From Cyanophora paradoxa CCMP329 (lineage: Eukaryota > Plantae > Glaucophyta), in NCBI GenBank assembly GCA_004431415.1, contig QPMI01000197.1:1-64000 (forward strand): a stretch of 64,000 bases of DNA. Reading direction: 5' to 3'. Positions 25,152 through 55,475 of this stretch are shown piece by piece. Positions within the stretch are counted from its first letter, which is position 1. Each line of letters begins with the position of its first letter. The notes under the pieces are model-generated. The model saw only the letters and a program-made list of their open reading frames with translations, was not told where the DNA came from and ran no database searches. The translations under genes and the position numbers were made by a program.

Positions 25152-26712
25152 GGATCAGGCGAGCGTGGGGCGACCAGGGGGGCGGGTGGGGGCGAGGGCG
25201 CGCTCTGTAGTCCACCGGCAGCTCGACCGTCCTGGGGTCGACGAGCCACACTGCCGCCCGAGGGTGAGGCGGGGCGGGCGCTTGCAGGGCCCCCAGGGCC
25301 CGCGGCACGCACCGGGGAACTTGGGGATGCGCAGCTGGTGGTGGGCGAACTGCATCTGCGGGGGGGTCAGGAACATCGTCGGCCCGAACGTGAATCGGGG
25401 GGTCGCGTCGCGCCTCGTCGTCGCAGTTGTGGGAGCGGATGTACCCCGGTGACAGGAAGCAGACATACGTCCGGCAGCGCTGCATCGCCTCCTGCGCATG
25501 CCGCGCGCCCCGCGCGCTCGGCATGCTGGAAGGCGCGAGGCGGTGGGCGACGCGCACCCCGATCTTGGCCATCCACTTCTGGCCCGCCTTGAGCTCGCGG
25601 TCGACCCTGCGCGGGGCGAGGGCGTCAGCGGTGCGGGGGCGGGGGAGGGGGCGAGGGAGAGGGGTGGCCTTGGAGGGGGGCGAACCATATCTTGAAGCCG
25701 GCGGCCTCGAGGGCGTCGCAGTAGCGGAAGACGAGCGTCGCGTCGACGTGGGCGTAGCTGCAGGCGGCGTGAGCACCGGCAGCGTGCGGCGGGGGCCGGG
25801 ACAAGCGCCTGACGAAGCAGTCCCAGGCCTTGCCGTCGGCGGCCGGCTGCAGCGGGGGCGGGTGCTGCGGGACTGCAGCAGGCGCCTGCTGGGCGCGCTG
25901 GGCGGCCGGCGGGGAGGGCGCCGCTGGGGGACGGGCTCGCGTCGGGGAAGGGAAGCACGGGCGGGGTACACTGACCGGGGGCCGGAGGGGCCGGGCGGCG
26001 GGCGCAGCGGGGCGCGGGGCGGCGGGCGCAGCGGGGCGCGCGGCAGGGGCGGCGGGCTGCGGTGGCGGGTGAGTGCGCGGTGGAGGCCGAGGGGTAAGGG
26101 GCTGGGAGTGGGGCGCACCGCGGGGGCGGGGAGGGAGCGGAGGTAGGGCACGACGGCGGCGCACTGGGCTGTACCGTCGTACATGTTGTCATTAACGGCG
26201 CGGCGGACAAGCTCGGGCCACGAGTCCACGACGGGGTTGCCGCTCACGTACAGCTCCTGCAGGGCGGCGAGGCGGCCGATCTCCGGCGGCAGCGCCGTGA
26301 GCTGGTTGTCACTCACGAGCAGCTCCTTCAGGGCGGCGAGGCGGCCGATCTCCGGCGGCAGAGCCGTCAGCTGGTTGTCACCCACGTACAGCGTCTGCAG
26401 GTTGGCGAGGCGGCCGATCTCGGGCGGCAGCGCCGTCAGTCGGTTGTCGTTCACGTTCAGCCACCGCAGGGCGGTGAGGCGGCCGATCTCCGGCGGCAGG
26501 TCCGTCAGCCGGTTGTTGGTCAACCACAGCTTTTCCAGGTTCGTCAGCTTGGCGAGCTCGGCCCCCGGGATGCGCGTGAGCTTGTTATAGCCGAGGTCGA
26601 GCTCGCGGATGTTCGCCGGCCCCGCTCGCGCGATCTCCGCCGCCGGCCACTCCGTCCGCCCCTCCTTCTCCAGGTCCAGCTTCCCCTCCGCCGGGATCCA
26701 CCCCTTGCCCAT
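25152..26712 (-). pseudogene. LRR-TIR gene A1 (TIR type A), last exon separated by the transposon insertion
   Basis: ATG at 26712 (MGKGWIPAEGKLDLEKE) is followed by LRRs with 4 LPPEIGRL modules. Spliced TIR exons read AWDCFVSYAHVDATLVFRYCDALEAAGFKIWVDRELKAGQKWMAKIGEAMQRCRTYVCFLSPGYIRSHNCDDEMQFAHHQLRIPKFPVWLVDPRTVELPVDYR. The final exon seen in the paralog (MMLASVNW) is absent. Confidence 0.85.
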
Positions 26713-27800
26713 GCCTGCGGGGCGGTCAGCCGCAGAAGCGCGCCGCGGGGAGCGCGCCCCCGCCCCGCCCGGCGGGTCCCCAGCCTGCGGGGGGCCGCCC
26801 GGCCCGCGCTGAGCCCCTCCCGCAGGGGGCGGTGCACGCGCGCGCCGGGCTCTGCCTTTACCGGCCGCCCCGCCCCGCCCGAGTCGCGGCTCGGGGGAGC
26901 GACGGCGGCCTATGGGAGATTGCACCCCCACGCCCGGGCGCGCGCTGGGTCCTCCCCCCCTCCCCCCGTTCGTGGGTTGGCGAACGAGGCAGCAAGCGAC
27001 GCCGGAGCGTGGGGCCCCCCCCACAGGCCCGGCCCCGTCGACTCGCCCCGCATCTTACCCGACGTCCGCGCGCCCGCCGCGTCGCTTGGTGGGATCAGTG
27101 CGGCCCCTCGCACGCTGCTAGGCGACCCGTGCGGCCCAGAGCGAATTCGAAGCGATTCGTAGATTCTAGACCGGCGGGATCCGCCCAGCGGCAACTAGCG
27201 AGCAACCGGCGTTCTGCGCCCGCCCGGAGGAACGCACCTTCGACGGATCGCCTTGCAGAAGCAGAGCCGAGCTTTCGGAACCGACGGAGCCCGCCCGGTC
27301 AGAAATCCTTGCCGGTCGCGTGCTGCCTGCTGGCTGCTCGCCCGCTGCCCTGTGGAGCTGCGCGCCGGTACAAGCAAGCAATGAGCGAAGGACAGGAGCG
27401 ATGCCAGAAACCCGTCGGCTTCGCACCTGCCGCGATGAATGCCGATTCACCGAAGCGCTTGGGTACGGCCACGCCGAAGCGCCGGGTACGGTCGCGCCGC
27501 AGGCCTCCGCTGCTTTCTTGGCAGGCGGGCGGGTCTGTGAGCTGCATATACCTATAAACGGCGTTCCGGACCGGTGCACTACTGCCCGTCCACTTCATCG
27601 TGCGCCAGCCTTCCAGAGCGATCATATGCATGATCAGGACGCAGGCGCAGCTGCAGCTGCAGTCATCAAGATGCAGCTGCGCCTGCGCACCGGCAGCTGC
27701 CGCCTGGCAGCCGGGCCCGAGGCCATGGCGGAGCAGAGCGCCGTCCGCGGTGGCGGGTCGACCCGCTCCTCGTTCAGCAGTACTTCTGTAAATCCAGCAG
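26713..27800. promoter_or_regulatory. Conserved 5' flank shared by all four LRR-TIR genes (also 42005-42430, 50337-51530, 55476-55850)
   Basis: The blocks ttctagaccgg...cggcaacta, gcgcaccttcgacggatcgcctt and gagcgatgc(c/a)agaaacccgtc are found upstream of each copy. A regulatory role is inferred only. Confidence 0.5.
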
Positions 27801-28457: not shown

Positions 28458-31205
28458 ATGTTCCGCGCGCTGGCGCGGCTGCCGGCGCTGCGGTCGCTCT
28501 GCGCGGACCGGTCGGGCCTCGGGGAGGAGTCCGCGACGCACCTGCAGGAGCTGGTGCAGCAAAGTCGCCGCAGGGGCAGGGGCAGCCGGCGGGCGGGCAG
28601 AGGGGCCAGCGGTCCCCCGGCCCTGAGAAGGCGGCGCCCTCGATCGGGAGCTCTGCCTCCCTGGAGGCCGCCCCCGCCCCGGACGCGGCGGGGCTCCCGG
28701 CGACCCTCAAGCCCCGCCCCGCGCTGCCGCCCGCCGCCGGAGCCGGAGCCGGAGCCGGCGCCGGCGCCGGATCCTCCCTCGTCGCCGCCGCCGGCGCCGC
28801 CGCGCCCCGCCCGTCAACAACGACGACGACAGCGTCGGCTTCTCCCCCCGCCGCCGCCTCCGCCCCGGGCTCTCGCCCCGACTCCTTCAGCTGGCAGCAG
28901 CCGGACCAGCGGCGGCCCTCGACCAGCGACGGCCTCGCCGGCCCGGGCCTCCTCCCGCCGGGCGCTGTCATCGCCGGCATCAGGTCCGCCCGCCCGCCCC
29001 CCCGCCCGCCCGCTGCGCTGCGCCGCACAGAAGATGCTTGCTGGCCGCTCTGTCTACCTTTCCATCTCTGTCCACCTGTCCTTGACCCGCCCTCCCGCCG
29101 GGATGCAGGCGGGCGTCGACGGCGGCGAGCCTTCCGCGCACCTACTCCGGCACCTCCCTCGCATCCACCGTCCTCCTCAACCCGCCCCAAGTGAGACCAA
29201 CCTTCCTCCATCTAACTAACTAAAAACAGAGACAGAACAGAGGTGATAGGTCTACTGAGCCTCCTCTAACTAACTAACTAATTCACCTTGAGACCATCCT
29301 TCCCCCACCTAACTAACTAACTCTCTCGAACTAAATAACGAATCTCCCTCTTCTTGTTCTCCCCCCCTCTTCTTCTTCTGCCGCCCCTCACGCCCCTCGC
29401 AGACGGCGCCGGCGGGCCCGCCGAAGCGGCCGAGCGGCCTGAGCGCCCTCCAGGTCCACCCCCACCCCTTCCCACCCCCCTCCCCCCCCCATCCCCCCTC
29501 CCCCCCCTCCCCCCCCCTCCCCCCCCCCCCGAGAAGCTTGGATCTAGCCGGACGTGACGCAAGGAGCCTATTGAACCTAGAGAACGCCCGCCGAGGGCCC
29601 CGGGCCCGGCCCCGCCACCCCCTGGGGCAGACCAGGCGCCTCGCCCCCGCCCGCGCCCTCCTCCTCATCGCGGGGGCAGGCGCTGCTGGACGCGAGCCCG
29701 GTGGTCTTCGGCGCGGAGGAGCTCGCCCGCGAGGAGCGCCGCCTCCGCCGCCGCCGCCGGTGCGAGCCGCCCGCCCCCGCCCCGGCCCGCCCCGCCCCGG
29801 CGCCACGTCGTCGCTAGCTGTAGCTGTCTAGAGCTACTACACCTTGAATGCTATAGAACGAGGCCTCTTCTGACGGTGCCGCGCAGGCTGGCGAGGCAGG
29901 CGGCGGCGGAGGCGCGGGCGGACGCGGAGCGCGTCGCCACGCCGGCGGCCCTGCAGCAGATGCAGCTGCAGCACTCGGCGACGGCCCCGGGGGCGCTCGC
30001 GCCGGGCCTGGCGGGGCGGTGGCGCAGCTCGCCGCGCGGCGCATGTCGCGGCGCATGTCCCTCATGAAGCTCGCCGAGCTCGCCGCCCAGGGCGCCGAGG
30101 TCTCCGCCTTTCTGAGGTGCCGCCCTCCTCCCTTCGGCGCGTCCGCAGAGGCTCACCTCGTTCGCCGCGGCGCAGCTCGGACGGCTCGCCGCTGCGGCAG
30201 CCGGCAGGCGGCAGCGGCGGGGCCGGCGCGTGGAGCGAGGAGAGCAGCTCGGGGAGCAGCGCGGAGGAGGCGGCCGCCGGCTCGGCGCAGGAGGAGGACG
30301 AGGCCGAGGAGGAGCGGATGCGCGAGGCGCGCCCGCCGCTGTTCGCCTTCGTTCGCTTCCGTTTGCTGTCCGCTGAGGGGGGTCCCGGGCGCAGGAGGAC
30401 CCGCTGAGCCTCACGGGCTGGGCGAACGCTCGCCAGGCGAAGAAGGCGCGGCACCGGGGGGCGGGGGCGGGGCCCGCGGCCCCCGGGCAGGAGGGCAGGG
30501 CGGCCGCCGCGGCTGCGGCGAAGGGGCCGCTCAAGTCGGGCGGCGTGGGGGCCCGCCTCTTCCGGTTGTACATGGCGGTACCCCTCCCGTCCATGCGGCT
30601 CCTCAGGGAGCGCGGCCCCCGCTCGCCCTCCCCGGACTCCCGCTCGGCCTCTCCCCCCCGGGCCCAGACCGCCGCCGGCCGCGTCCGCGTCTCCACCCCC
30701 CTCGACCCCGTCCACCAGGCGGTGCGCGTACCCCCCTCTCCGCCTCCATCTCACTCCCCCCCTCCTCTTGACCTGGGTACGGCAGGCTCTGGACTTTGCA
30801 AACGCGCGGGCGGAGGCGCGGAGGCTGCGGCAGGAGGCCGGCATGAGCGCGTCCGCGGGGAGCCTCTCCTTCGGCGACCTACCCCCCCCGCCCGGCGACC
30901 TCCCGCCGGGCCTCAGATACGTACCCCCGCCGCGGAATAGGCGGGAGTCCACGGCGGACGGGGTACGCCGCTCCTCTGCGTCGGGCGGGGGGCGCCGGAG
31001 GAGCAGCATACTGGCGCCCGCCGGATCCGAACCGCCGCCCGCCGGCGCCGGCGCCGGGCTGGGGCCCCAGGGGCGGGGCCAGGGGCACCTCTCCGTCACG
31101 CAGTCGGCCCCCTCGCTCGGGGGCCCGGGCCTGCGCTCCGGCGCCCGCCCCGCGACGGTCCCCGCGGAGCCCGCCCGCCCGCACCTGCCCCCGGGGGCGG
31201 CGTGA
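28458..31205 (+). pseudogene. Duplicated 3' half of the START-domain gene, joined to an unrelated LRR(RNI)-like exon
   Basis: 28562-31205 aligns with about 37478-39861 (both end ...PARPHLPPGAA*). It is preceded by the exon MFRALARLPALRSLCADRSGLGEESATHLQELVQQ. Small deletions relative to the 38-39 kb copy suggest decay. Confidence 0.6.
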
Positions 31206-34058
31206 CTCTTTAAGGAAAAAGGGGGGCGGGCGGGGCGGCGGCGGGGGAAAATGCGAGCCGGGGGCGGGGGCGGGGGCGGGGCGGGCGGGGCGGCGCCAAG
31301 AGGAGTGGATTGGAAGCCGCGAGCTGTTGGTGCGCTGCCGATGGCGAGGCTCGGGCCTCGGGTCTCGGGGGAGGCGGCGCGCGCCCTCAGAGTCAGTACA
31401 GGAGAATTCGAGGAAGAGGAGCCGCAGGCTGAAAGGCCGCGATCGGGCGCGGGGGCGCGGGCCGGGCGGGCCCGCGCCCCGCTGGCGGGCCCTCGCGCCC
31501 TGCAGCTGGCTCCAGATCTCTCATGATCAGTCTATCGGGCCAGTACTATAGCTAGAACTAGTCACGTGCACTGGGCCACTGCATGGGGAAGGGGAAGGGG
31601 GTCCTTCCCCAATGATAGCGCTAGCCTAGTACCGTAGTACACGTATACGTAGCTAGCTATAGCTATAGCTATATAGCTATAGCTGCCACGGCCTCAGCTC
31701 TTAATTCGGCCCTTCCATTTCGCTGCGAAAATCGGGCGAGTCCCGTCCCGGTTTTTTGTATGGGCCAGTTTGCAACGTCAGTGGGCGCCCGCCATAGTAA
31801 AAGACCGGGAATTTTCCCGGTTTTTTGTGGTAACGAGCTCGGATCCCGCGGGGCCCGCTTTTCAAACAAAGCCGCATTCGCGTCGCTGCGCACGCGGCAC
31901 ACGATGCGACGTAGCTACAGCGCGCGGAGAGGCGGTAGAGAGGCCGGGGCGGCGTGCGGGCGGCCGGTGGACGCCGGCGCAGCGCCCCGGGGAGCGGCGG
32001 GGCGGGCCGGGGCGCGGGGCGCGGGCGCGGGGCGCGGGGCGCGGGGAGAGAGGCGGGGGCGCTGCTGGGGACGGCGGCGGCGGCGCGGGCCGATCGGCGG
32101 CGCAGCGGCCTCAACCTCCGTCCCCTCCGCCGGGCCCGGCCCGACGCGCCCGCCCGCCCGCCCCCGCGCCAGTCCTCCTCCGCGGCTGCGGGCGGGCGGG
32201 CGGTGAGCGCGGGGGCCGCGGGGGCGGGGCCGGTGTCGGGGCGCGCACCGCGGGCGGGCGCCGGGGAGGCGCGAGCGGCGGGCGGGCCTCGGGCTCCGCA
32301 GCGGCTACGGTCGCTCCGGCGGGGGCGCGCGGCTCGGCCGGGGCCGCCGCGAGGCGCTCCTCCGCCAGCGCGCCCGCCGGCGGCCCCGGAGGCGAGGTCG
32401 AGGAGGGCGGGGGCGGGCGGGGTCGGGGAGGGCGAGGGCGGCGCCGTCCGCGGGGCGATCGGCGGGGACGAGGCGGGCGAGGGCGGCGCCCGCCGGCCGG
32501 CCCTCAGCTCCGGGCACCGCCTGCTCCGAGGGCGGCCCTGCTTCGTCCTGCTTCCGCCGCCGCCGCTCCTCCGCCGCCCCCGCGCCCGCGCCGCCGCAGC
32601 TCGGGCCGCCGTCCGATGCCCGCGCCTTTGCCTGCGGCCGCTGCGGCGTACGCGCCGGAGAGCCTCGGCCCGCCGGCGCCGCCTCCGCGCCCACGGGCCG
32701 CGCGCCGCCGGGCGCACGCGCGGCGAGGGCGGCGCCCTGGGGCGGGCGGGGCGGCGGGAGGGGAGTGGCGGCGGGGGCCGCGGGGCGCTGCGGGGGCCGA
32801 GCTGCGGGGCGGCCGCCGGGGGAGCGCCCTGTGCAGAGGAGAGCGGACTCCGGGCGCGAGGGCCGTACGCAGAGGCCGGCCGCCGCCTCACAGCTGAGCG
32901 GCGCCCCGTGCCGCGCCGGCTCCGTTGGATTCGCGGCGGTTACTAACTGCCGACAGCCGTTAGGCTAACTGCCGCGCAGCGGAGGGGGCGGCGCTTCGGG
33001 GCTTCGGGGCGCACGCTGCTCCTCGCTGGCGACCGGCGCGGGGCGGCCTCCGCACCGCGAACCGCGTCACGGGCAGTGCCGAGCCGTGCTCCACGGGCTT
33101 CGTGCTCCGCGCCCCACTCACGGCGACTCCGCCCTTCGCCCGCCAGTCCATTCAAGCGCGGCGCGGCCATCCGGGGCGACCTGCCGCGGGCGTGCGTCAG
33201 CTTCGACTTCGCCGCATGCAAATGCACGACGCTGTGCGAACCAATGCCCTCCGCCAAGGCCGCCGCCGCCGCGCCTCCGCCGAGCTCGCGACGACCGCGA
33301 GCGGCCATTGCGGCGCTTCCGAGGGAGGCTGATCGTGCTCCAGATGCGTGGAGGAGCGCATTCTGCTGGCCAGCTGCTCGCCCGCACGCTGTGGAGCGAG
33401 ATCTCGTCACGATTTCTGTGCCGGCTTGGGGTACAGCGATCGCCCGCTTCGCCGCCTTCGCTCCTCGAGCTTCTATGCGCCTTGCGGCGCGGCGCCGGTA
33501 TACGTGCGTTCCAACTCTATCGACATCCCGTGCTGGTCTAACACGCGCCGCTCGCAGCCTTGCGATCTTGTGCGACTCGGCGATGCGGTCGATTGCAGGG
33601 ATCAGCGCGCGCGCAGGCGCGCGGCTCGAGGCGAGTGCGATGCGAGCCCGGCGTCGAGCGGATCCAGGTATGCGGCTCGGCCGCGCACGGACGCGCCCAT
33701 CCTGCGCGACTCTGCCCGACTCTGCCGCCTCCGCTCCCAACGAGCCGGCCCGCGTCGACGTCGCGCCCGCGCGCACGCTCGCTGACGTCCGCCTCGAGCG
33801 GCGCCCCGCGGGCCCCTCGCGATCGGACTCGCGAGTCGCCTCGCGCGAGAGGCGCCGCCGCAGCGCCGCGCGCCGCGCCTCCGCGCGCCCCTCGAGCTCC
33901 CGGAGGGCGCCGGCGACTCCTCCTCCTCCCTCCCGCGCGCCCCGCGCGCCCCGCGGCCGCCCCGCCCCGCCCGCCCCGCCCCGCCCCGCCCCCGCAGCTT
34001 GGCTTACTTTGTCTTTGGCCTTGGCTCTCTGGCTGTTTACTCTCCGCCCAGGTTCGAC

Positions 34059-37000: not shown

Positions 37001-39861
37001 TCTTGTTCGTTCCCGCGCGTTTCCTCGCTCGTGATCTGACGGGTACGCGGCAAGATCCGGGGGATGAAATCGCTGGTGTCGTTCCTTCCGGGGTCCTCGT
37101 CGGGGCAGCCGTCGCCCACTGGCTCCGAGGAGGACGAGCCGGGGGACCCGCGCCCCGCCCCGCCGCACGAGGGCGCAGAGGGACCCGGGGGGGAGGCCCC
37201 GCGGGGGGGTACGGAATCCGAGCCCCGCGAGGCGGCGGCGCCCCGCGAGCCGCAGGCGGACCCCGAGAGGGCGCGCGTGCCCTCCCCGGGGCCGGACGCC
37301 GACGCGCCGTCGCCGCAGCCGTTGCCGGGCCGCCCGAGTCGGCGCAGCCGTCGAGGAAAGCGGCGCGGCTCGCCGCGCCGCAGCCGCTCGACGTTGCAGG
37401 CGACCGTTCCCCCTCCCCTTCCCCTCCTCCCGTCGCCGGTCGCGGCGGCGGCCGGGGCCGCGCGGGCGGCCGCAGCGAAGTCGCCGCAGGGGCAGGGGCC
37501 GGCGGGCGTGCAGAGGGGCCAGCGGTCCCCGGCCCTGGGAAGGCGGCGCCCTCGATCGGGAGCGCTGCCTCCCTGGAGGCCGCCCCCGCCCCGGACGCGG
37601 CGGGGCTCCTGGCGACCCTCAAGCCCCGCCCGCGCTGCCGCCCGCCGCCGCCGCCGGCGCCGCCGCGCCCCACCCGTCAACAACGGCGGCGGCGGCGTCG
37701 GCTTCTCCCCCCGCCGCCGCCTCCGTCCCGGGCTCTCGCCCCGACTCCTTCAGCTGGCAGCAGCCGGACCAGCGGCGGCCCTCGACGAGCGATGGCCTCG
37801 CCGGCTCGAGCCTCCTCCCGCCGGGCGCTGTCATCGCCGGCATCAGGTCCGCCCGTCCTCCGCCCGCCCGCCCGCTGCGCTGCGCCGCACAGAAGATGCT
37901 TGCTGGCCGCTCTGTCTACCCTTACATCTCTGCCCACCTGTCCTTGACCCGCCCGCGTGCAGGCGGGCGTCGACGGCGGCGAGCCTGCCGCGCACCTACT
38001 CCGGCACCTCCCTCGCATCCACCGTCCTCCTCAACCCGCCCAAGTGAGTGAGACTCCACTGAGCCTCCTCTAACAGACCCCTTCCTCTCTCTACCCCCTC
38101 GAATCTTCTTCCGCCCCTCACGCCCCTCGCAGACGGCGCCGGCGGGCCCGCCGAAGCGGCCGAGCGGCCTGAGCGCCCTCCAGGTGCGCCCTGCAGGCGG
38201 CCGTCCCAAGAGGCTTGAATCTGGCCGGACCTGGACTTGACGCTAGAGCCTAAAGAGCCTAGAGAACGCCCGCCGAGGGGCCCCGGGCCCGGCACCCCGC
38301 CGCCCGCCGCGCCCTCCTCCTCATCGCGGGGGCAGGCGCTGCTGGACGCGAGCCCCGTGGTCTTCGACGCGGAGGAGCTCGCCCGCGAGGAGCGCCGCCT
38401 CCGCCGCCGCCGCCGGTGCGAGCCGCCCGGCCCCGCACCGGCCCCGGCGCCAGGTCGTCGCTAGCTGTAGCCGTCTAGAGCTACTGCACCGTGAATGCTA
38501 GAGAACGAGGCCTCTTCTGACGGTGGCGCGCAGGCTGGCGCGGCAGGCGGCGGCGGAGGCGCGGGCGGACGCGGAGCGCGTGGCGACGCCGGCGGCCCTG
38601 CAGCAGCTGCAGCTGCAGCACTCAGCGACGGCCCCGGGGGCGCTTGGCCTGGCGCCGGGCCTCGCGGGGGCGGTGGCGCAGCTCGCCGCGCGGCGCATGT
38701 CGCGGCGCATGTCCCTCATGAAGCTCGCCGAGCTGGCCGCGCAGGGCGCCGAGGTCTCCGCCTTTCTGAGGTGCCGCCATCCTCCCTTCGGCGCGTCCGC
38801 AGAGGCTCACTTCGTTCGCCGCGGCGCAGCTCGGACGGCTCGCCGCTGCGGCAGGCGGTGGGCGGCGGCGGCGGGGCCGGCGCGTGGAGCGAGGAGAGCA
38901 GCTCGGGGAGCAGCGCGGAGGAGGCGGCCGCCAACTCGGCCCAGGAAGAGGACGAGGCCGAAGAGGAGAGGATGCGCGAGGCGCGCCCGCCGCTGTTTGC
39001 TGTTGTTTGATTCCGTTTGCTGTCCGCTGATGGTGGTCCCGGGTACAGGAGGACCCGCTGAACCTCACGGGCTGGGCGAACGCTCGCCAGGCCAAGAAGG
39101 CGCGGCACCGGGGGGCGGGGGCGGGGCCCGCGGCCCCCGGGCAGGAGGGCAGGGCGGCCGCCGCGGCTGCGGCGAAGGGGCCGCTCAAGTCGGGCGGCGT
39201 GGGGGCCCGCCTCTTCCGGAAGTACATGGCGGTACCCCTCCCGTCCATGCGGCTCCTCAGGGAGCGCGGCTCCCGCTCCCCCTCCCCGGACTCCCGCTCG
39301 GCTTCTCCCCCCCGGGCCCAGACCGCCGCCGGCCGCGTCCGCGTCTCTACCCCCCTCGACCCCGTCCACCAGGCCGTGCGCGTACCCCCATTCCCCCTCC
39401 GTCTCGCCCCCGGCCCGCTCCCCTTGACCGGGGTACGGCAGGCTCTGGACTTTGCGAACGCGCGGGCGGAGGCGCGGAGGCTGCGGCACGAGGCCGGCAT
39501 GAGCGCGTCCGCGGGGAGCCTCTCCTTCGGCGATCTACCCCCTCCGCCTGGCGACCTCCCGCCGGGCCTCAGATACGTACCCCCGCCGCGGAACAGGCGG
39601 GCGTCCACGGCGGACGGGGTACGCCGCTCCTCCGCGTCGGGCGGGGGCCGCCGGAGGAGCAGCATACTGGCGCCCGCCGGATCCGAACCGCCGCCCGCCG
39701 GCGCCGGCGCCGGGCTGGGGCCTCAGGGGCGGGGCCAGGGGCACCTCTCGGTCACGCAGTCGGCCCCCTCGCTCGGGGGCCTGGGCCTGCGCTCCGGCGC
39801 CCGCCCCGCGACGGTCCCCGCGGAGCCCGCCCGCCCGCACCTGCCCCCGGGGGCGGCGTGA
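34059..39861 (+). CDS. START (StAR-related lipid transfer) domain protein with a long low-complexity C-terminus, multi-exon; true 5' end uncertain
   Basis: The exons ANFLWDPTSRTKWDK / VVDELERTTRVDYV / MFVIAYRSVIHKK / GQFIRAHVFKG / GFIVREVDERSSELTYVIQMDVK follow the START pattern (R.KWD; RSV.H; RA; TYV...D.K). Confidence 0.75.
35288..35993. repeat. 353-bp exact tandem duplication inside the START gene
   Basis: gcaaacttcctgtgggaccc starts at 35288 and again at 35641. The copies look identical. Confidence 0.95.
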
Positions 39862-40429
39862 CTCTCTCTAGTACACGAGTGATCCCCGGGGGCGACGTGA
39901 CTCTAGCGCGATTTCTTGCTCTTCTGTACACTATGGTTTCGTCCTTATTCTAGTTAGCGTTGTGTCTTATATATTCCGGCATCCCACTGAGCCTGCCCGG
40001 CGGCCAAACGTTAACCCGAGCCCCGATCGCGAGCCCGAGCTACCCTCGCAGTCGATCTCGCCGAAAAACATCGTACAGACAGACTCATGATCAAAGACAG
40101 ACTCTTAGGCAGCTAGGACAGAACCGCTAGACAAGAATCACAATTTGGAAGGACAAATTACGTCCAGCCGCCTGAACAATTCAACCGAATTCGAAGGGAA
40201 ATCTAAGACTTTGGCGGATGCGGAGCGCCGGGCCTCGCGGAGGAGGGCTGAAGCACCCGCGGCCTCCTCGAGGAGGGAGGAAGGGGGGAGGGAAGGGCCG
40301 GGGAGGGAGGCGGGCCGGAGCCGGGCCCCGCCCGGCGGCGAGGGGAAGCGAGCGGGCGAGGGCCTGGGGCCGACGGCTTAAGCTTGGCTCGCGGGGGGCG
40401 AAGCGGAGCCGGGCGGCCGGGCGGGGCCC

Positions 40430-42004
40430 TCAGCGGCGGGCGCCCTCCTCGCAGGCCTCGAGCAGGAGCCGGAGGCTGACCCGCCGGAAGGCCGCCTCCG
40501 CGCAGCACGGGATCGCCACGCGGGCAAAGACGAGCCGCAGGTCGGACGGGATCTCCCCCGCTGAGGGGCGATCGAATTCGGTTGGCTGGCGGGGTGGTTC
40601 TGGGGCGGGGGCGCACGGGCGGGGAAGCGGCAGGACTTCTCGTCGTGGAGGAGGACGATGTTCTTCCCCGCCCGCGCCGCGTGCCGCACCTCGCCCAGCA
40701 CGTACTGGCTCGCCAGCACGTCTGCGCAGCGCAGGGTCCGAGAAGATCAGACGCCGCCGGGCACGAGAACAGCCGCGCGGACCCTGAGAGATGATGAGGA
40801 CGACGCTCGCGGAGGCGTCGATGATGTTCTCGAGCCTGCGGGGCGGGGGGCCGGCCCGGGTGAGAGCGCGGCGAGCACTCCAACTCGAGAGGCGCGCACT
40901 GGTGGAGCTCGAGGCGGGAGTCGTCGACGTCGAGGAAGACGCGGAGGCCGGGGCGGGCCTGCTCGAGCTGGAGCTTGAGGGCGAGGGCGAGGTGGCCGGC
41001 CGAGGACTGCTTGTGCGAGAGGAAGACGTCGTACTGCGTCGCTGCGGCGGGGGGTGAGGCTTGGGCGGGGCCGGCTGCTCCGGGGTGGTGCACGGACCGG
41101 GGGCCGGGGCGGCGGGGCGCACCGCGGGGGCGGAGGCGGGGAGGGAGCGGAGGGATCCGAGGCGTTCAGGCGTTCAGAGGGGGTTGCCGCTCACGTCCAG
41201 CGTCTGCAGACGGGAGAGGCGGCCGATCTCCGGCGGCAGCGCCGCCAGCTGATTTTTCTCCACGCTCAGCTTCTGCAGGTTGGAGAGGCGGCAGATCTCC
41301 GGCGGCAGCGCCGTCAGCTGGTTGTTGCTCACGTACAGCTCCTGCAGGTTGGAGAGGCGGCCGATCTCGGGCGGCAGCGCCGTCAGCTGGTTGTTGCTCA
41401 CGTACAGCTCCTGCAGGATGGAGAGGCAGCCGATCTCCGGCGGCAGCGCCGTCAGCTTGTTGTCGCTCACGTTCAGCCACCTCAGGTCGGCGAGGCGGCC
41501 GATCTCCGGCGGCAGCGCCATGAGCTGGTTGCCGCTCACGCCCAGCACCTGCAGGGCGGCGAGGCGGCCGATCTCGGGCGGCAGCGCCGTAAGCTGGTTG
41601 CCGCTCACGCCCAGCGTCTGCAGGTTGGAGAGGCGGCCGATCTCGGGCGGCAGCGCCGTCAGCTGGTTGTCGTTCACGTACAGCGTCTGCAGGGCGGCGA
41701 GGCGGCCGATCTCCGACGGAAGCGTCGTCAGCTGGTTGCTCTGCACGTTCAGCCACCTCAAGGCCGCGAGGCGGCCGATCTCCGGCGGCAGGTCCGTCAG
41801 CCGGTTGTTGGTCAACCACAGCCACTCCAGGTTCGTCAGCTTCGCGAGCTCGGCCCCCGGGATGCGCGTGAGCTTGTTCTCGCCAAGCTCGAGCCAGCGG
41901 ATATTCTCGGGCCCCGCCGCCGCGATCTCCGCCGCCGGCCACTCCTCCCGGTCCTTCCCCCCCAGGTCCAGCTTCCCCTCCGCCGGGATCCACTCCTTGC
42001 CCAT
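40430..42004 (-). CDS. LRR-TIR gene B1 (TIR type B, SARM1/TIR_2-like) with an in-frame TGA between LRR and TIR
   Basis: ATG at 42004 (MGKEWIPAEGKLDL) is followed by 9 LP(P/S)EI modules ending GNPL-TGA (41174). TIR exons read YDVFLSHKQSSAGHLALALKLQLEQARPGLRVFLDVDDSRLELH / LENIIDASASVVLIISQ / VLASQYVLGEVRHAARAGKNIVLLHDEKSCRFP / EIPSDLRLVFARVAIPCCAEAAFRR...EEGARR*. Confidence 0.8.
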
Positions 42005-46088: not shown

Positions 46089-48441
46089 TGCCGCCGGCGC
46101 CGCCGGCGCCGGCGCGGCCTCCGAGGGGGCGGTACCCGGCCGCGAGACGGGCGGGGAGGGCGCCGGCGAGGGCGAGGGGCCGGAAGGGACAAAAGGCTGC
46201 CCAGATGAAGCCGCCGGGACCGCCAGGGCCGCTGCTGGGGCCTGGGCCGGGGGGGCGCGCGGGGGCTTCCTGGGGTACCGCGCCGCGCCGCGGCCGGTGC
46301 GGACGCCGGACTTCTTGAAGTCTGAGCGGCGGCCCCCGCGATCAGCGTCCACACGAATAATCTCAAGCTATCAAACTAATGGACCCTTAAACCGCCCAGG
46401 ACTCCAGATTCTTAAGAAGACTAGGACCCTACCCCTCTCCCCCATAAAGCGATCGGCTCCCCCTGTGGCCAGGCCGCGCCCCGCTTTAAGCTCCAGCTCC
46501 GGCCAGGCCGCGCCGCGCCGTGCCGTGCCGCGCCGCGAGCGCTGCCCCGCTTAAAGCCATTAGACTCTTAAGCCGCCCAGGAATTAAACTATTAGATTCT
46601 TAATCTGCCCAATAGTTCCCGGCAATCAGCACGGCGAGCCACGAGCGATCCACTCCCGCTCTAAGGGACGCAAGCCCCGCCCCCCGCACGCATACGAGCG
46701 ATCCGCTCCCGCTGTGGCCAGGCCGCGCCCCGCTTAAAGCCCCCGTGCGCAATCCGCCCGCCCCCGCTTGAAGGGCCGCAACCCTCCCTCGGCCCCCGCC
46801 CGCCGCGCCGCGCACCGCCGTCGTAGAGGATGCCGTTGCGGTACTCGGCATGGCCCCCCGGGCCCTGCGCCCCGCCCCGCCCCGTGAGGCTCAGGTTGGA
46901 TTGGATTGGATAAGATCAGATTGGAGTGGATTGGATCAGATTGGATCCGGCAGGTTGGCGGGCGGGGCGCACGCTGGATTACATTACATTAGATTAGATT
47001 AGAGCGGGTTTCTCGTAGCAATATCTAAACGGCGGGGGCAGGGCGGGGGGGGGGGGGGGGGGGGGGGGGCGAGGCGCACACCGCGTTCACATTAAATTCG
47101 TTTACGCCGCGTTAGAGGCACTATGAAACGTTGGATCTAAATCAACAGTCCCGCAGCCCGGCGGGAGGCGGGAATTTTAGAGTGGTCCCGGCGGTAGGCG
47201 GGGCTACAGTGGTCAGGGGAGGCGGGAAAGCTCATAGGACGAGGCGGGGGCGGGCGGAAATCCGGAGTCCTCGCTAGATTAGATTAGGTTAGATTAAATT
47301 AGAGCGGGCGCCTCATAGCGAAGGGCAGCTTAGAAAGGGCGGGCGGGGCCGGGAATCCGGGGCGGGGCGGGGCGGGGCGCACGTCGCGGTCGCCCATGAC
47401 GAAGGGGCCGACGTACAGGACCTCCCCGTCCGGGCCCAGAGCAGGCCCGAACCTGCGCGAGAGTGGAGAGGATCGGATCGTATTGGATGGGATGGGATCG
47501 GATCAGCCCTGAGTAGCTAGCTTCGGGCTTCGAGTCTAGTCGGCTTCGAGTGGGCCGCGAGGCGGCTTGTACTTAGAAGCCCTAAATCCTTCCTTTCATT
47601 AGAAGCTCAGAAACCTAAGAAGCTAGGAGGGGAGGCGGCCAAGCCGGAAGAAAGCAGCGCGGACCGGAGGGTGCCGTGGCCGTGGCGGGCGATCGAGTGG
47701 CCGTGGGCGCCCGTGAAGGGCCCCTCGTACACGTCCCCGCTCGGGTGCTCCTCCACCCCTGCGAACGAAGCTCAGGGGAGGGTGGGGCTAGGGGAGGGGG
47801 ATGGGGGTAGGGGGGGTACCGAAGGGAAGGCCGTCCTCGAGCCACTCGCCCGAGAAGCGGCTGCCCGTCTCGGCGACGGTGAGCGCGCCCTGCTCAGATC
47901 AGATCAGATCAGATCAGATCAGATCGGATCAGATCAGATCAAATCAGATCGGATCTGATCTGGTTCTGCTCACCTGACCCTGACGGACGCCCTGGTTCCA
48001 CTCGCCCTCGTATTTGTCCCCGTTCGTGTACAGCATAACGCCCCGCCCTGTGCTATTTTCAGAAAGTGGGGGGGGGAAGAGTCGAGGGGTACGGGCTCGC
48101 ACCGTGCCGCACGTTGCGGCGCCAGTCGCCCGTGTACACACGGCCGTCCCAGTACGTCATCGTACCCCCCGCCCCGTCCATCGAGCCCTCCCTCCACGGG
48201 CCCTGCACCCCGGGTCGTTTCGGGCGGGGGGGGGGGGGGGAGAAGAGGACGAAGGGGGGTACGGGAACCTGGTAGACGTCGCCGTTGGAGAACTTCATGA
48301 GGCCCGAAGGACCGGTCATCTGACCGTCCACCCACGGCCCCTCGTACACCTGTACCCCCGGGGAAACAAGTCATAAGCCTCTCAAAGGAGTGGGGGGAAG
48401 GAGTTAAGGAGGGGTACGCACGTCTCCGCCCTGGAAGCGGC
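44637..48441 (-). pseudogene. 5'-truncated duplicate of the MORN-repeat gene
   Basis: The exons YEGPWVDGQMTGPSGLMKFSNGDVYQ, GTMTYWDGRVYTGDWRRNVRHG and GRMLYANGDEYIG and the end RKTPPAGAKRK* match 56275-59303. Homology stops abruptly after gccctggaagcggc (48441 vs about 59303). Confidence 0.85.
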
Positions 48442-48681: not shown

Positions 48682-50336
48682 CTAGCGCCGCAGAAAGTCG
48701 CGCAGGCCGGCGACGAGCTCGCCGGCCGCCGCGTCCGCCGCCGCCGCCCCCTCCCCGCGCTGCATCGTCCAGTTCACCGACGCCAGCATCATCTGCCGCC
48801 GTCCGCGGATCAGGCGAGCGTGGGGCGACCAGGGGGGCGGGTGGGGGCGAGGGCGCGCTCTGTAGTCCACCGGCAGCTCGACCGTCCTGGGGTCGACGAG
48901 CCACACTGCCGCCCGAGGGTGAGGCGGGGCGGGCGCTTGCAGGGCCCCCAGGGCCCGCGGCACGCACCGGGGAACTTGGGGATGCGCAGCTGGTGGTGGG
49001 CGAACTGCATCTGCGGGAGGGTCAGGAACATCGTCGGCCCGAACGTGAATCGGGGGCCGCGTCGCGCCTCGTCGTCGCAGTTGTGGGAGCGGATGTACCC
49101 CGGCGAGAGGAAGCAGACGTACGCCCGGCAACGCTGCATCGCCTCCTGCGCCCGCCGCGCACCCCGCGCGCTCGGCATGCTGGAAAGCGCGCGGCGGTGG
49201 GCGACGCGCACCCCGATCTTGGCCATCCACTTCTGGCCCGCCTTGAGCTCGCGGTCGACCCTGCGCGAGGCGAGGGCGTCAGCGGTGCGGGGGCGGGGGA
49301 GGGGGCCACGGAGAGGGGTGGCAATGGAGGGGGGCGAACCTTATTTGGAAGCCGGCGGCCTCGAGGGCGTCGCAGTAGCGGAAGACGAGCGCCGCGTCGA
49401 CGTGCGCGTAGCTGCACGGCGGCGTTAGAGCCGGCGGCGTGCGGTGGAGGCCGGGCAACGCGCCTGACGAAGCAGTCGCAGGCTTTGCCGTCGGCCGCCG
49501 GCTGCAGCGGGGGCGGGTGCTGCGGGACGGCAGCAGGCGCCTGCTGGGGACGCTGGGCCGCGGGCGGGGAGGGCGCCGCTGCGGGGCGGGCTCGCGTCGG
49601 GGGAAGGGAAGCACGGGCGGGGGTACACTGACCGGGGGCCGGAGGGGCGCGTGCGGCGGGGGCGGCGGGCTGCGGTGGCGGGTGAGTGCGCGGTGGAAGC
49701 CGAGGCCGGGGCCGGGGTGAGTGCGCGGTGGCGAGGGGCGGGGCCGGGTGCCGGGGCGGCGGGGCGCACCGCGGGGGCGGGGGCGGGGAGGGAGCGGAGG
49801 TATGCGAGGCGTTCAGCCGTGTTCTTCTTCTTGAGGAGCTCCGGCATGGCCGTGAGGGGGTTGCCGTCCACGTACAGCACCTTCAGGGCGGCGAGGCGCC
49901 CGATCTCCGGCGGCAGCGCCGTCAGCTTGTTGCCGCGCACGTCCAGCGCCTGCAGGATGGAGAGGCGGCCGATCTCGGGCGGCAGCGCCGTCAGCTGGTT
50001 GTTCTCCACCCAAAGCCCCTGCAGGGCGGCGAGGCGGCCGATCTCCGGCGGCAGCGCCGTCAGCTGGTTGCCATCCACGTTCAGCACCTTCAGGGCGGCG
50101 AGGCGGTCGATCTCCGGCGGCAGCGCCGTCAGCTGGTTGCTCTGCAACCACAGCTTCTCCAGGTTCGTCAGCTTCGCGAGCTCGGCCCCCGGGATGCGCG
50201 TGAGCTTGTTATAGCCGAGGTCGAGCTCGCGGATGTTCGCCGGCCCCGCCGCCGCGATCTCCGCCGCCGGCCACTCCGTCCGCCCCTCCTTCTCCAGGTC
50301 CAGCTTCCCCTCCGCGGGGATCCACCCCCTGCCCAT
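48682..50336 (-). CDS. LRR-TIR gene A2 (TIR type A), apparently complete
   Basis: MGRGWIPAEGKLDLEKE is followed by 4 LPPEI modules, the cap GNPLTAMPELLKKKNTAERLAYLRSLP and a Pro/Ala linker. The spliced TIR runs DCFVSYAHVDA...SHNCDDEMQFA...MMLASVNWTMQRGE...LRDFLRR*. Phases of the linker exons were not fully verified. Confidence 0.85.
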
Positions 50337-53300
50337 GCCTGCGGGGCGGTCAGCCGCAGAAGCGCGCTGCGGGGAGCGCGCCGCTGCCCCGTCCGGCGGG
50401 TCCCCAGCCTGCGGGGGGCCGCCCGGCCCGCGCTGAGCCCCTCCCGCAGGGGGCGGTGCACGCGCGCGCCGGGCTCTGCCTTTACCGGCCGCCCCGCCCC
50501 GCCCGAGTCGCGGCTCGGGGGAGCGATCGGCGGCCTATGGGAGATTGCACCCCCACGCCCGGGCGCGCGCTGGGTCCTCCCCCCCCCCCGTTCGTGGGTT
50601 GGCGAACGAGGCAGCAAGCGACGCCGGCGCCGGAGCTCGAGCGTGGGCCCCGTCGACTCGCCCCGCATCTTAGCCGACGTCCGCGCGCCCGCCGCGTCGC
50701 TTGGTGGGATCAGTGCGGCCCCTCGCACGCTGCTAGGCGACCCGTGCGGCCCAGAGCGAATTCGAAGCGATTCGTACGCGTAGATTCTAGACCGGCGGGG
50801 TCCGCGCAGCGGCAACTAGCGAGCAATCGGGGTTCTGCACCCGCCCGGAGGAGCGCACCTTCGACGGATCGCCTTGACGCAGCAGAGCCGAGCTTTCGGA
50901 ACCGACGGAGCCCGCCCGGTCAGAAATCCTCGCCGGTCGCGTGCTGCCTGCTGGCTGGCAGTGGCTGCTCGCCCGCTGCTCTGTGCAGGGGCCTGCGCGC
51001 CGGTACAAGCAAGCAATGAGCAAACGACAGGAGCGATGCCAGAAACCCGTCGGCTTCGCGCCTGCCGCGATGAATGCCGATTCACCGAACGCTGGGGTAC
51101 GGTCACGCCGAAGCGCCGGGGTACGGTCGCGCCGCCTCGGCTGCTTTCATGGCGGCCGGTGGAGCGGTACGTATACGCTGCCTTTGCTTCTACGGTACGG
51201 TCGCGCCGCGGGCCTCTTGCTTTCATGGCGGGCGGGCGGGTCTGTGAGCTGCATATACCTATAAACGGCGTTCCGGACCGGTGCACTACGTATACTGCCC
51301 GTCCACTTCATCGTGCGCCAGCCTTCCAGAGCGATCATGATCGGGACACAGGCGCAGCTGCAGCTGCAGCCATCAAGACGCAGCTGCGCAGACGCACCGG
51401 CCGCGGCAGCTGCCGCCTGGCAGCCGGGCCCGAGGCCATGGCGGAGCACAGCGCCGTCCGCGGTGCACGTGGCGGGTCGACCCGGCCCGGCCCGCTCCTC
51501 GTTCAGCAGTACTTTCTGTAATCCAGCAGCACTCAGACGAATCATGAGCGAAGTTCTGGTCGCCGCGGCGCCGGCTCCGGCGAACGGGGCGCGGGAGAGG
51601 CTCGAACCAGCTCGATGCTCGCCGGCACCGCGGCGCCGCGCGGCCTGCTGATGCACATGGGCGCACGCGTGCACGCAGGCGCCGTCCAACGACGCTTTAC
51701 CCGTTGACGCAGTGCATGCCTGCAGTCGCGGCTCCCGCGGCCAGCGCCCCGGCGCCCCGCGCGAGCTGCAGCGCGCCTCTCGGGGCCCCGCGGCGGATCT
51801 GCGGGCGCCCGGTCCCGCCCCGCCGGACCGCGGACTGGAGACCTCTCCGCGCGCCCCTCGCCCGTCGCCGCGGCGCGGCCCTCGCCCCGCCCCCGCCCCC
51901 GCCGCCCGCGCAGCGCAGCGCCCCGCCGCCCGCCAGTCCCCGCCGGGCGCCCTCCCCGAAGGGCCGCGTTCGCCCCCGGCCCGCCCCGCCCCGCCCCGCC
52001 GCGCGCCTCGAATCCCCTTCCCGCCCTCCCTCGGACGCCTCGCGCGCCCCCGTACCCCACCCCGCAGGCCCTTCGAGCCGGGCGCCGGCGCCCCTTCGCA
52101 CGGGCCGGCCCTTCGGATCCCCCGCCTTCCTCCCGGGGATCGAGGCGAGCCCCGCCCTCCCCGCGCTTCTTCTGAGGCTTCATCTCGGCTTCATCTCAGG
52201 CTCACCTGAACATGAGATCAGGCCCGGCCCGAGGACGCCGTCCAGTCGGCGGCGCCCGCCGCCCGCCGCCCGCCGCCCGCCCCCGGCCCGCCTTCCCTCC
52301 CTCCGAGGCTCCTCGATCCGAGGAGAGTGGGCGCCCGCCCCGTACCCCCCGACCCCTCTCCTTCGCGGCCCCAAGCCTGCCTCGCCCCCTTCTCCCGGGC
52401 CTCGAGGTGGGCCCCCTCCTCCCTCCCCTCCCCTCCCCTCCCCCCCCCCCCTCCCCCGTCTTTAACCCCCGCCTTACCCCCGCGGTCTCGCCCACTTGCC
52501 CTCGCCCCCGCAGATCGCAGGCGTGTGGCGCGGGATATCCCTACCCCCCCCTTCCCCCCCGGGGCCGCCCGCCCTCCCCCCGTCCAGCTCCCTCCCTCCC
52601 TCCCTCCGCGGCGGACCGCCTGCCGCCCGCACGGGCGCCCCTCCTGCGCCATCGGGCCGCCCGGCCTCGCCCCCCGCTCGCCCCCCCTCCGCCCCCGGGC
52701 CCCTGGCTCGGGGCCGTCTGAGCCGTCTGAGCCGTCTGGGCCGTCTTCATCCGCCCCCGTTTCTCCTCTCCCTCGCGCTGTCCCCGCCCCGCCCCGCCCC
52801 GCCCCGCCTCTCGCATAGGCCGCCCCTCTCTTCGCCCCCTCCTCCGAGGATCCCTCGCAACCGGCCCCCCCTTCGGCCCTCCGCCCCGGCCCGGCCCCGG
52901 CCCCGGCCCGGCCTCCGGCCTCGCGGGCCGCGCCGAGGCCTCTAGATCTGGCGGTGGATCGAGGGCGGGCGCCGGCTCCCTCCCCTCCGCGCCCTCGCTT
53001 CCGAGTCCTTCCTCCACGCCGCCTCCCCGCCGGCGCCTCCCGGCCCCGCCCGTCCCCGCCCCCCGGACTCCGGACTCCGGGAGGACCCCGGCCCGGGAAC
53101 CTGCAGTTCATTGTTGCAGTTGGACCCGGGACTCGTACCTGATTACTAAGTCACTAGCCTAGTAGCCATGGTCATGATCACGAGCGCTTGTCCCTTTCAG
53201 TGATCATGACTGTCCGGATCCATATGCACGTGATCGTGACGTCAACATGTACAGGCCTCGGGCCTTGAAGCACAAACCGTCGAACTATGCACCGCGGCAC

Positions 53301-53955
53301 AGATGTGCAGGGCTCCCGAGGCCTGATCATGAGCCCCGGGGGCTCGGAGTTCATTGCAGTGCAATAACTCCAGCCTGGCAGAGATCTAGACTCGTATGCA
53401 TGCCGCGCTGCATGATCATAATCAGGGCCTTGCTATGACTATGAGGCTCTTTGTAGCTCCGCGGCCTAGTACTACGCGGGCCTCGGGAGCCCCGAGAGCA
53501 CCCGCGGCCTCCTCGAGGGGGCGGGGGAGGGGAGAAGGGCGGGGGAGGGGGGGAGGAGGACAGAGAGGAGGTACAGGGAAATACTTCCGAAAATTCGACT
53601 CAAATCTCGACTCAACTGAATCACTCAACCCAAGAGAAAGACTTCTGAAGACTAGAGCAAAGAAGAAAGACAAGTACGAACTCAAGCAGGTCAGGCTCAG
53701 GGCTGGGAGCCAGGTGCGCAGGGCCGGGCCGGGTCCGTGGGGCGGGCGGGCGGGGCCCTCAGCGGGCGAGAAGGGCGGGAGGTTTGGGGGGGGAGGGGAG
53801 GAGGAGAGGGCCCTCCAGGGGACCCGGCGCGCCGCGCGGGGCGGGGCGGAGGCGGAGGCGCCGACGGCGGGCGGGGGGAAGCGAGCGAGCGACGGCCTGG
53901 GGCCGACCGGAACGAGGCGGGAAGCGGGGCGGAGGCGGGCGGGGCCTCGGGGCCC

Positions 53956-55475
53956 TCAGGGGCGGGCGCCCTCGTCGCGGGACCCGCCGGAAGGCCGCCT
54001 CCGCGGGCGGGCAAAGACGAGCCGCAGGTCGGACGGGATCTCCGCGGCTGTGGGGCGATCAAATTTCGAGGTTCGGTTGGCTGGTAGAGCGACCTAGGCC
54101 TGGGGCGGGGGCGCACGGGCGGGAAAGCACGTAGTGGCTCGCCAGGACGTCTGCGCAGCACGGGGCCGGGGAAGATCAGGCGCCGCCAGGCACTAGAACA
54201 GCCGAGCGGACCCTGGGAGATGATGAGGACGACGCTCGTGGAGGCGTCGATGATCTTCTCGAGCCTGCGGGGCGGGGGGCCGGCTCGGGTGAGAGCGCGG
54301 CGAGCACTCCAGCTCAGAGGGGCGCACTGGTGGAGCTCGAGGCGGGAGTCGCCGGCGTCGAGGAAGACGCGGAGGCCGGGGCGGGCCTGCTCGAGCTGGA
54401 GCTTGAGGGCGAGGGCGAAGTGCCCCGCCGAGGACTGCTTGTGCGAGAGGAAGACGTCGTACTGGGCCGCTACGGCGGGGCGTGAGGCGGAGGGGCGGAG
54501 GGGCCGGCTGCTCCGGAGATGATGCACGGACCGGGGGCGGGCTGCGGCGAGGGGTGAGGAGCGGGGCGCGGGGGACGGGGCGGCGGGGCGCACCGCGGGG
54601 GCGGGGGCGGGGAGGGAGCGGAGGTATGCGAGGCGTTCAGGCGTTCAGAGGGGATTGCCGCTCACGTCCAGCGTCTGCAGACGGGAGAGTCGGCCGATCT
54701 CCGGCGGCAGCGCCGCCAGCTGATTTTTCTCCACGCTCAGCTTCTGCAGGTTGAAGAGGCGGCAGATCTCCGGCGGCAGCGCCGTCAGCTGGTTGTTGCT
54801 CACGAGCAGCTCCTGCAGGCTGGAGAGGCGGCCGATCTCCGGCGGCAGCAACGTCAGCTGGTTGTTGCTCACGTACAGCTCCTGCAGGGCGGCGAGGCGG
54901 CCGATCTCCGGCGGCAGCGCCGTCAGCTGGTTGCTCTGCACGTTCAGCCACCGCAGGGCGGCGAGGCGGCCGATCTCCGGCGGCAGCGCCGTGAGCTGGT
55001 TGCTACCCACGCCCAGCGTCTCCAGGGCGGCGAGGCGGCCGATCTCCGGCGGCAGCGCCGTGAGCTGGTTGCCGCTCACGCCCAGCGTCTGCAGGTTGGA
55101 GAGGCGGCCGATCTCGGGCGGCAGCGCCGTCAGCTGGTTGTCGTTCACGTACAGCGTCTGCAGGGCGGCGAGGCGGCCGATCTCCGACGGAAGCGTCGTC
55201 AGCTGGTTGCTCTGCACGTTCAGCCACCTCAGGGCGGCGAGGCGGCCGATCTCCGGCGGCAGGTCCGTCAGCTGGTTGTTGGTCAACCACAGCCACTCCA
55301 GGTTCGTCAGCTTGGCGAGCTCGGCCCCCGGGATGCTCGTGAGCTTGTTCTCGCCAAGCTCGAGCCAGCGGATGTTCTCCGGCCCCGCCGCCGCGATCTC
55401 CGCCGCCGGCCACTCCGTCCGGTCCTTCCCCCCCAGGTCCAGCTTCCCCTCCGCGGGGATCCACTACTTGCCCAT
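53956..55475 (-). pseudogene. LRR-TIR gene B2, pseudogene
   Basis: Starts ATG GGC AAG TAG (stop at codon 4, 55464-55466; GAG in B1). It has 9 LRR modules and the same TGA after GNPL. The TIR lacks 71 bp including the GEV helix and has further small deletions. Confidence 0.85.

Follow-up and report, generated by a model that had tools for sequence, protein, structure and literature searches.

Proteins that pair a repeat domain with a TIR domain have been described in several arrangements. The animal NAD+ hydrolase SARM1/TIR-1 is built as ARM-SAM-SAM-TIR, Toll-like receptors (TLRs) carry a leucine-rich repeat (LRR) domain, a transmembrane span (TM) and a TIR domain in that order (LRR-TM-TIR), plant TNL receptors combine a TIR domain, an NB-ARC switch and LRRs, and soluble LRR-TIR proteins are predicted in bacteria. 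Here we examined a 64-kb stretch of DNA from the glaucophyte alga Cyanophora paradoxa, referred to throughout as the window, and confirmed on its minus strand a cluster of four LRR-TIR genes, of which genes 1 and 3 are called type A and genes 2 and 4 type B. We favour, with about even confidence, the reading that these genes belong to a C. paradoxa-specific family of soluble LRR-TIR proteins, which would act as innate-immune sensor-effectors with an NAD+-cleaving TIR domain and evolve by duplication and loss.

Each of the known systems resembles the window genes in part. As in SARM1, a repeat domain lies N-terminal to the TIR domain, and the type B TIR is closest to the SARM1 TIR among solved structures (E 2e-5), its Glu aligning with that of the SARM1 motif WVHKE; one paralog (P0061, g4738) also adds a SAM domain. 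Unlike SARM1, the window genes have neither SAM nor ARM, the LRR standing in the place of ARM, and no octamer-forming module, the resemblance is weak, with about 25% identity, and the type B fold is poorly modelled. With TLRs they share the order LRR then TIR, and the type A TIR finds its best match in a TLR (chicken TLR15/TLR2 TIR, 7ylf, 2e-6). They differ from TLRs in having a Pro/Ala-rich linker and no signal peptide or membrane span in a hydropathy scan, and in that their LRRs are short 23-residue units of the intracellular or bacterial type with a plain N-cap, whereas TLR ectodomain LRRs are cysteine-capped. Plant TNLs have in common with them the pairing of TIR and LRR, a catalytic-type Glu, clustering, and birth-and-death evolution with variable LRRs, and both lineages are Archaeplastida. 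The domain order in the window genes is nevertheless reversed, the NB-ARC switch is absent, and their TIRs lie outside the plant clade, RUN1 and Roq1 matching type A only at E 0.025-0.3.

The predicted bacterial soluble LRR-TIR proteins (P0076, P0096, P0039) hold the two domains in one open reading frame (ORF) and have LRRs of the same LxxLPPEIGxL type, but they are without introns, N-cap or Pro/Ala linker, and their relation to the Cyanophora genes is known here as likeness, not descent. The contigs that encode these single-ORF proteins are of bacterial type, and restriction-modification genes and further TIR genes lie close by. On one of them, JGI metagenome contig L003 (4001-7380), the LRR-TIR gene (P0096) is followed by two pentapeptide-repeat-TIR genes and has as neighbours an integrase-like gene and the S subunit gene of a type I restriction-modification system, an arrangement that, judged from its predicted genes, looks like a repeat-sensor/TIR defence island.

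The four copies and their domains

Translation placed the N-cap MG(K/R)xWIPAEGKLDL at 26712, 42004, 50336 and 55475, all on the minus strand. An earlier prediction for this DNA (the original prediction) had named these four paralogs and had given each an intronless LRR array, a Pro/Ala linker and an intron-split TIR domain, with no membrane span, signal peptide, NB-ARC/NACHT or ROC-COR segment; this anatomy was borne out by translation, by the Pfam scores for LRR and TIR_2, by exon-for-exon gene models and by the hydropathy scan. We defined the family by an N-terminal MG(K/R)xWIPAEGKLDL..EWPAAEIAxAGPxNIR followed by LxxLPPEIGRL repeats, which all four window copies possess. The spliced proteins analysed were the public EukProt models (tig00000841_gNNNN), and exons were searched one at a time. 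Three window genes align exon for exon with such models, namely gene 1 with P0024 (g4721), gene 2 with P0001 (g4726) and gene 3 with P0002 (g4730), and no model for gene 4 was among the search matches. The predicted proteins are small, with about 370-450 residues. A Pro/Ala-rich stretch lies 3' of each LRR array and is followed by short exons in shifting frames that spell TIR motifs. The model introns have GT-AG or GC-AG ends throughout and measure 51-170 nt, in a region whose GC content is 66-80% in most 2-kb windows; the published figures for the whole Cyanophora genome are 67.6% GC, 9.2 introns to a gene and 86 bp for the mean intron (PMC6704402).

The Pfam families LRR_8, LRR_4 and LRR_14 scored strongly in all four LRR ORFs. 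The array is uninterrupted and consists of 23-residue units (LxxLxVxxNxLTALPPEIGRLAA), numbering from 3 to 9 across paralogs. The LRR scaffold LTALPPEIGRLAAL is nearly invariant, and the positions of the concave face are highly variable: entropy reached 2.1-3.2 bits at LRR positions 2, 3, 5, 7 and 8 versus at most 0.9 bits at positions 9-21 (58 distinct units from 12 family models). A concentration of LRR variation at concave-face positions is thus supported. In a comparison of gene 1 with gene 3 no exon has diverged more than the LRR exon, whose two copies are 84% identical and differ by in-frame indels; identity is 92-100% in the TIR exons and in most introns but only 68% in the linker intron I1, and a 3' tract of 100% identity may stem from gene conversion. 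Two apparent interruptions of the array were set aside. The 60-nt in-frame "intron" that P0024 places in the LRR (26316-26257) was probably introduced by the gene predictor, since GTGAGT, read there as a donor, is simply the Val-Ser codons of a normal LRR unit in a continuous ORF, and skips of 74, 103 and 144 nt within the LRR region of RNA contigs are most likely repeat-collapse assembly artefacts rather than introns.

The C-terminal parts of the models scored 65.6 (P0002), 69.0 (P0024) and 34.2 bits (P0001) against TIR_2 (PF13676), all above the Pfam gathering score of 28 bits, so that the check proposed in the original prediction found them to be TIR domains. Single TIR exons (25-47 amino acids) gave matches that were all sub-threshold, as expected at such length. 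Two classes can be told apart, as BLASTP of the type A TIR against the type B TIR detected no similarity. Besides the chicken TLR domain, the best solved relatives of type A include BtTir (7uxr), and the Glu of its SHNCDDE motif aligns with the Glu of the YEL motif in TLR and BtTir. In type B the Glu of SQYVLGE aligns with that of the SARM1 motif, which we take to be the catalytic E642; it is invariant in four type B paralogs and deleted in pseudogene 4. The Glu residues claimed earlier for both types were thus recovered by alignment, and a catalytic-type Glu, at the alpha-C position, is present in both TIR classes and in every non-decayed copy. The hydropathy scan, which was not a dedicated predictor, found neither a membrane span (the highest 19-residue Kyte-Doolittle mean, 1.71, lay inside a TIR beta strand) nor a signal peptide or other hydrophobic stretch at the N-terminus, and Pfam found no NB-ARC, NACHT, Roc or COR match in any model or ORF searched.

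The four tandem copies differ in state: one is complete, one doubtful, one truncated and one dead. Of the four, gene 3 (g4730, P0002; 48682-50336, minus strand, as are all genes and exons below) alone is complete, with 9 coding exons separated by introns at 49769-49670, 49632-49579, 49463-49412, 49339-49261, 49211-49146, 49067-49011, 48967-48906 and 48858-48793, its Glu codon at 49070-49068 and its stop at 48684-48682. Gene 1 (tig00000841_g4721, P0024; 25216-26712) comprises the LRR ORF, the linker and the TIR exons as far as VWLVDPRTVELP, with the Glu codon at 25416-25414. Its identity to gene 3 is 89% from 27526 down to 25152, a point within the last intron beyond which the two are no longer similar, and gene 1 is therefore without the last TIR exon (MMLASVNW...RDFLRR), which was found nowhere else in the window. 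The terminal exon that P0024 puts at 25093-25040 is a makeshift of the gene model.

Gene 2 (g4726, P0001; 40430-42004) has 9 LRR units and a SARM1-like TIR in four exons (41039-40433), with the Glu codon at 40692-40690 and the stop at 40432-40430. All its type B exons are open and the splice sites intact. An in-frame TGA (41174-41176) follows directly after the LRR (SGNPL*); the public model excises it with a 170-nt GT-AG intron (41211-41042) that is without RNA support, and the other introns measure 51-100 nt. The TIR exons stayed clean while the duplicate gene 4 decayed, and hence gene 2 is more likely functional than not, as judged from its reading frames. Gene 4 (53956-55475) is 91% identical to gene 2 and is a type B pseudogene. 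Its N-cap at 55475 reads MGK*W, with a TAG at codon 4 (55466-55464), the TGA after the LRR recurs at 54647-54645, a 71-nt frameshifting deletion at 54129/54128 takes out LGEVRHAARAGKNIVLLHDEKSCR including the Glu, and the last exon has further deletions of 16 nt and 23 nt. The birth-and-death pattern of the original prediction therefore stood as regards the copies, with gene 3 intact, a stop ahead of the TIR in gene 2, gene 4 dead and gene 1 truncated at its 3' end, and is further fitted by segmental duplication and by the tract of complete identity between genes 1 and 3; the transposon proposed at gene 1 was left unconfirmed, as the ORFs of the adjoining sequence block gave no Pfam match.

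Transcripts, leader exon and start codon

Contigs from runs X1, X3 and X4 are RNA-like, in that they skip exactly the four predicted gene 3 TIR introns 49211-49146, 49067-49011, 48967-48906 and 48858-48793, and a single 269-nt X4 contig spans all four intron joints. Contigs from run X18 pass straight through the introns and are DNA-like. Three of the eight gene 3 introns are of the GC-AG type (49463-49412, 49067-49011, 48858-48793), as are the homologous introns of gene 1, and two of these three were confirmed by the RNA-type contigs. GC donors seem to be frequent in the very GC-rich Cyanophora genome.

RNA-type contigs (X3, X4) that end at 50340 carry a loose end matching 27240-27269 with 0 mismatches. 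This segment belongs to the 3' end of a non-coding leader exon of gene 1 (27238-27269, minus strand), which has the donor CGATCCGTCGAAG followed by GT. The donor motif was found four times, upstream of all four genes (gene 2 at ~42230, gene 3 at ~50859 and gene 4 at ~55673). In gene 1 the resulting intron of the 5' untranslated region (UTR) extends over 26715-27237 on the minus strand (~523 nt), with its acceptor 2 nt before the ATG, and no ATG is visible between 27400 and 27238 in the sequence of the gene 1 leader. With the leader spliced to a site 2 nt ahead of the ATG, MGKGW (MGKxW) is the true N-terminus. The N-terminal extension of P0001 (42103-42005) lies between the leader donor and the conserved ATG of gene 2, and is for that reason probably 5'UTR intron and not coding.

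The proteins were called cytosolic in the original prediction, which agrees with the lack of a membrane span and signal peptide, with the caveat that P0003 (tig00000841_g4736) and P0011 (tig00000600_g2261), type A paralogs encoded outside the window, both have a 33-residue C-terminal tail ending in KSCSVQ. This CaaX-like box suggests prenylation of these two predicted proteins. No CSVQ-type exon was found downstream of gene 3 or gene 1, so that such a tail was rejected for the window genes. N-myristoylation of the MG start was also set aside, as Lys/Arg after Gly and Ile at position 6 misfit the usual consensus. Separately, a CSVQ-type tail (HGSSLPGPRP...) turned up in an RNA contig, as a loose end at 48687.

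Receptor, adaptor and artefact readings

If the window genes encode innate-immune sensor-effectors, the concave face of the LRR would bind a microbial, viral or danger-related ligand, and binding would relieve autoinhibition or drive clustering. Self-association of the TIR domains would then create NAD+-cleaving active sites centred on the conserved Glu. The output of the SARM1-like type B might be NAD+ depletion and that of type A cyclic ADP-ribose (cADPR)-type signals, either of which would lead to a defence or cell-death response. Tandem duplication, loss, the swapping of effectors and changes in the number of LRR units would drive the evolution of the cluster itself. Glu-dependent cADPR production has been reported for several protist TIRs and for TLR TIRs, in a set that did not include Cyanophora (bioRxiv 10.64898/2026.04.20.719644).

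Several points weigh against this reading. Only one of the four window copies is clearly complete, and the NAD+-cleaving (NADase) activity and the immune role are what we infer, and infer only, from the protein sequences. The AlphaFold models, in which a flavodoxin-like TIR fold was sought, are weak, with pLDDT values of 57.7 for type A (paralog P0003, run without an alignment) and 55.8 for type B. The best Foldseek matches of both models are TIR domains, over 70-85 residues only for type A (E 3e-4) and marginal for type B (E 1e-2). Variability at the "x" positions of LRRs is partly generic to such repeats, and the dN/dS value of 3.1 at positions 2, 3, 5, 7 and 8 versus 0.9 on the scaffold (crude all-pairs Nei-Gojobori, 26 window units) is suggestive only, as it comes from non-independent all-against-all unit pairs with the pseudogene included. 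No RNA contig, in a set of short assembled contigs, covers 49434-49757, and hence none crosses the LRR-TIR linker. Finally, the genome paper cautions that Cyanophora gene models want manual curation (PMC6704402).

A first alternative accepts the LRR-TIR fusions as real, with the TIR as a non-enzymatic adaptor or scaffold in ordinary signalling or in cytoskeletal or ciliary biology, and not in immunity. Public models do attach type A TIRs also to myosin, BBS1, RING-IBR and beta-helix parts, type A has its best PDB match in the TIR of a TLR, a domain classically regarded as an adaptor, and Pfam searches of the ORFs identified no defence-type partner gene in the window. The catalytic-type Glu has nonetheless been kept in both TIR classes and all non-decayed copies, type B shows a likeness to SARM1, itself an NADase, as does the SAM-TIR paralog, and recognition receptors typically display such differences in unit number, variability of the concave face and turnover of copies. 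Catalysis has by now been reported even for TLR TIRs (bioRxiv 10.64898/2026.04.20.719644). We consider an adaptor function unlikely, although it is the strongest competitor of the immune reading.

Less probable still is that LRR and TIR are separate transcription units, or mostly non-functional relics, which the gene predictor joined across the low-complexity Pro/Ala stretch; the receptor architecture would then be an artefact of annotation, at least for type B. The linker without an RNA contig and the caution about the gene models both fit this alternative, as does the post-LRR TGA shared by genes 2 and 4, from which the model escapes by means of its unusually long intron; in addition, the paralog model P0014 treats the linker differently and loses strand beta-A. 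Against it stands the fact that the type A TIR exons have no Met before KWMAKIG, so that a stand-alone TIR would be without strand beta-A. LRR and TIR lie just ~300 nt apart, the two domains are united in at least 8 models from 4 contigs, in P0005 and P0289 a type B TIR follows a complete C-cap and linker, and in gene 2 the TIR exons remained open with intact splice sites as gene 4 decayed. The single-ORF proteins of bacteria further indicate that the architecture is a natural one. Together, the gene models, the missing start codon for a stand-alone TIR and the bacterial analogues point indirectly to a single LRR-TIR protein. Descent by decay from a longer ROCO-type (LRR-Roc-COR) or NLR-type gene, which the original prediction had named as a case that would speak against it, is very improbable: LxxLPPEIGxL repeats are common in ROCO and bacterial LRR proteins and many non-Cyanophora matches carry Roc or Ras, but none of the models and ORFs searched contains such a domain (Roc, COR, NB-ARC or NACHT), the spliced leader fixes the N-terminus so that nothing is missing there, and the linker is only ~70-100 residues long and conserved among paralogs.

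Flanking sequence and the family within Cyanophora

The truncated end of gene 1 adjoins a breakpoint zone (24901-25151, no strand assigned), where similarity to gene 3 ends at 25152 and is followed by a 15-nt tandem repeat, GGTCGGTGTAATAGG, in six copies (~25047-24958), and then by a block of low GC content. This block of 23.7 kb (window 1150-24900) has ~47% GC in a genome of ~70% GC, with sharp edges at ~1.1-1.2 kb and ~24.9-25.1 kb. It contains tandem arrays of 166-nt units (10214-12161) and of 360-nt units (23541-24501), 10 long ORFs searched in it gave no Pfam match, and no terminal repeats were found at its ends. The block truncates gene 1 and may be a foreign or mobile insertion. On its left it is adjoined by a GC-rich (~87%) tandem array at 1-1115, with ~8 copies of a 133-nt unit that match at 87%.

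Two further duplications were observed around the LRR-TIR genes. The segments 47640-48441 and 58520-59303 are 90% identical, and their minus-strand translation is MORN-like (YTNGDKYEGEW..., GDVYEGPFTG; domain called by eye); probably this is a neighbouring gene that was duplicated along with the LRR-TIR genes. Between genes 1 and 2, the segments 28780-31209 and 37643-39865 are 93-94% identical, lie ~8.65 kb apart and contain ORFs without a Pfam match; they may be two copies of a repeated element or of an intron-rich gene. A search of 10 GC-rich intergenic ORFs likewise gave no Pfam match.

At least two further members of the cluster, g4736 and g4738, lie just beyond the window. The N-cap (residues 1-45) was matched by 13 EukProt Cyanophora models of 205-651 amino acids, which by precomputed Pfam assignments comprise 8 LRR-TIR, 2 LRR-SAM-TIR and 3 models without a TIR match; P0017, one of these three, aligns as a type B TIR. 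The SAM domains are found in P0061 and P0121, both outside the window. P0061 (g4738), an LRR-SAM-TIR protein encoded just past it, has a TIR related to type B and carries STDWVRKEV. The family is wider than the LRR-TIR genes of the original prediction, the same N-cap and LRR being joined in some models to SAM-TIR and in some to no TIR. Related LRR models of the Cyanophora genome bear RING or SAM domains. Clustered at 50% identity, the type A TIR falls into at least 15 groups, every one of Cyanophora origin, in architectures that include TIR-only, SAM-TIR, RING-SAM-TIR-IBR, TIR-beta-helix, myosin-LRR-TIR and BBS1-TIR; its nearest non-Cyanophora relatives are prokaryotic and 26-31% identical. 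The type B TIR was found only behind the N-cap LRR, in five models.

From this variety of architectures, a wider picture can be drawn tentatively, and we rate it as possible but clearly less probable than the sensor-effector reading itself: the family might form a mix-and-match repertoire of intracellular receptors, in which a hypervariable LRR cassette, with diversity in unit number and on the concave face, was combined by exon shuffling with TIR-A, SARM1-like TIR-B, SAM-TIR and possibly RING or SAM alone. Such LRR-TIR receptors would have arisen independently of TLRs and TNLs, would have neither an NTPase switch nor a membrane anchor, and would signal by NAD+-derived products.

The genome paper of Cyanophora mentions neither LRR nor TIR (PMC6704402), and our literature search returned no paper linking Cyanophora with TIR domains or describing an LRR-TIR family. 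Were the sensor-effector reading true, the pairing of an LRR sensor with a TIR enzyme would have arisen again outside animals and plants. The glaucophytes are, to our knowledge, the least studied of the three primary-plastid lineages, and we know of nothing reported on their immunity. The family would then mean that LRR-TIR pairing needs neither a nucleotide-binding switch nor a membrane in order to work, and that different effector domains can take one another's place behind a shared sensor.

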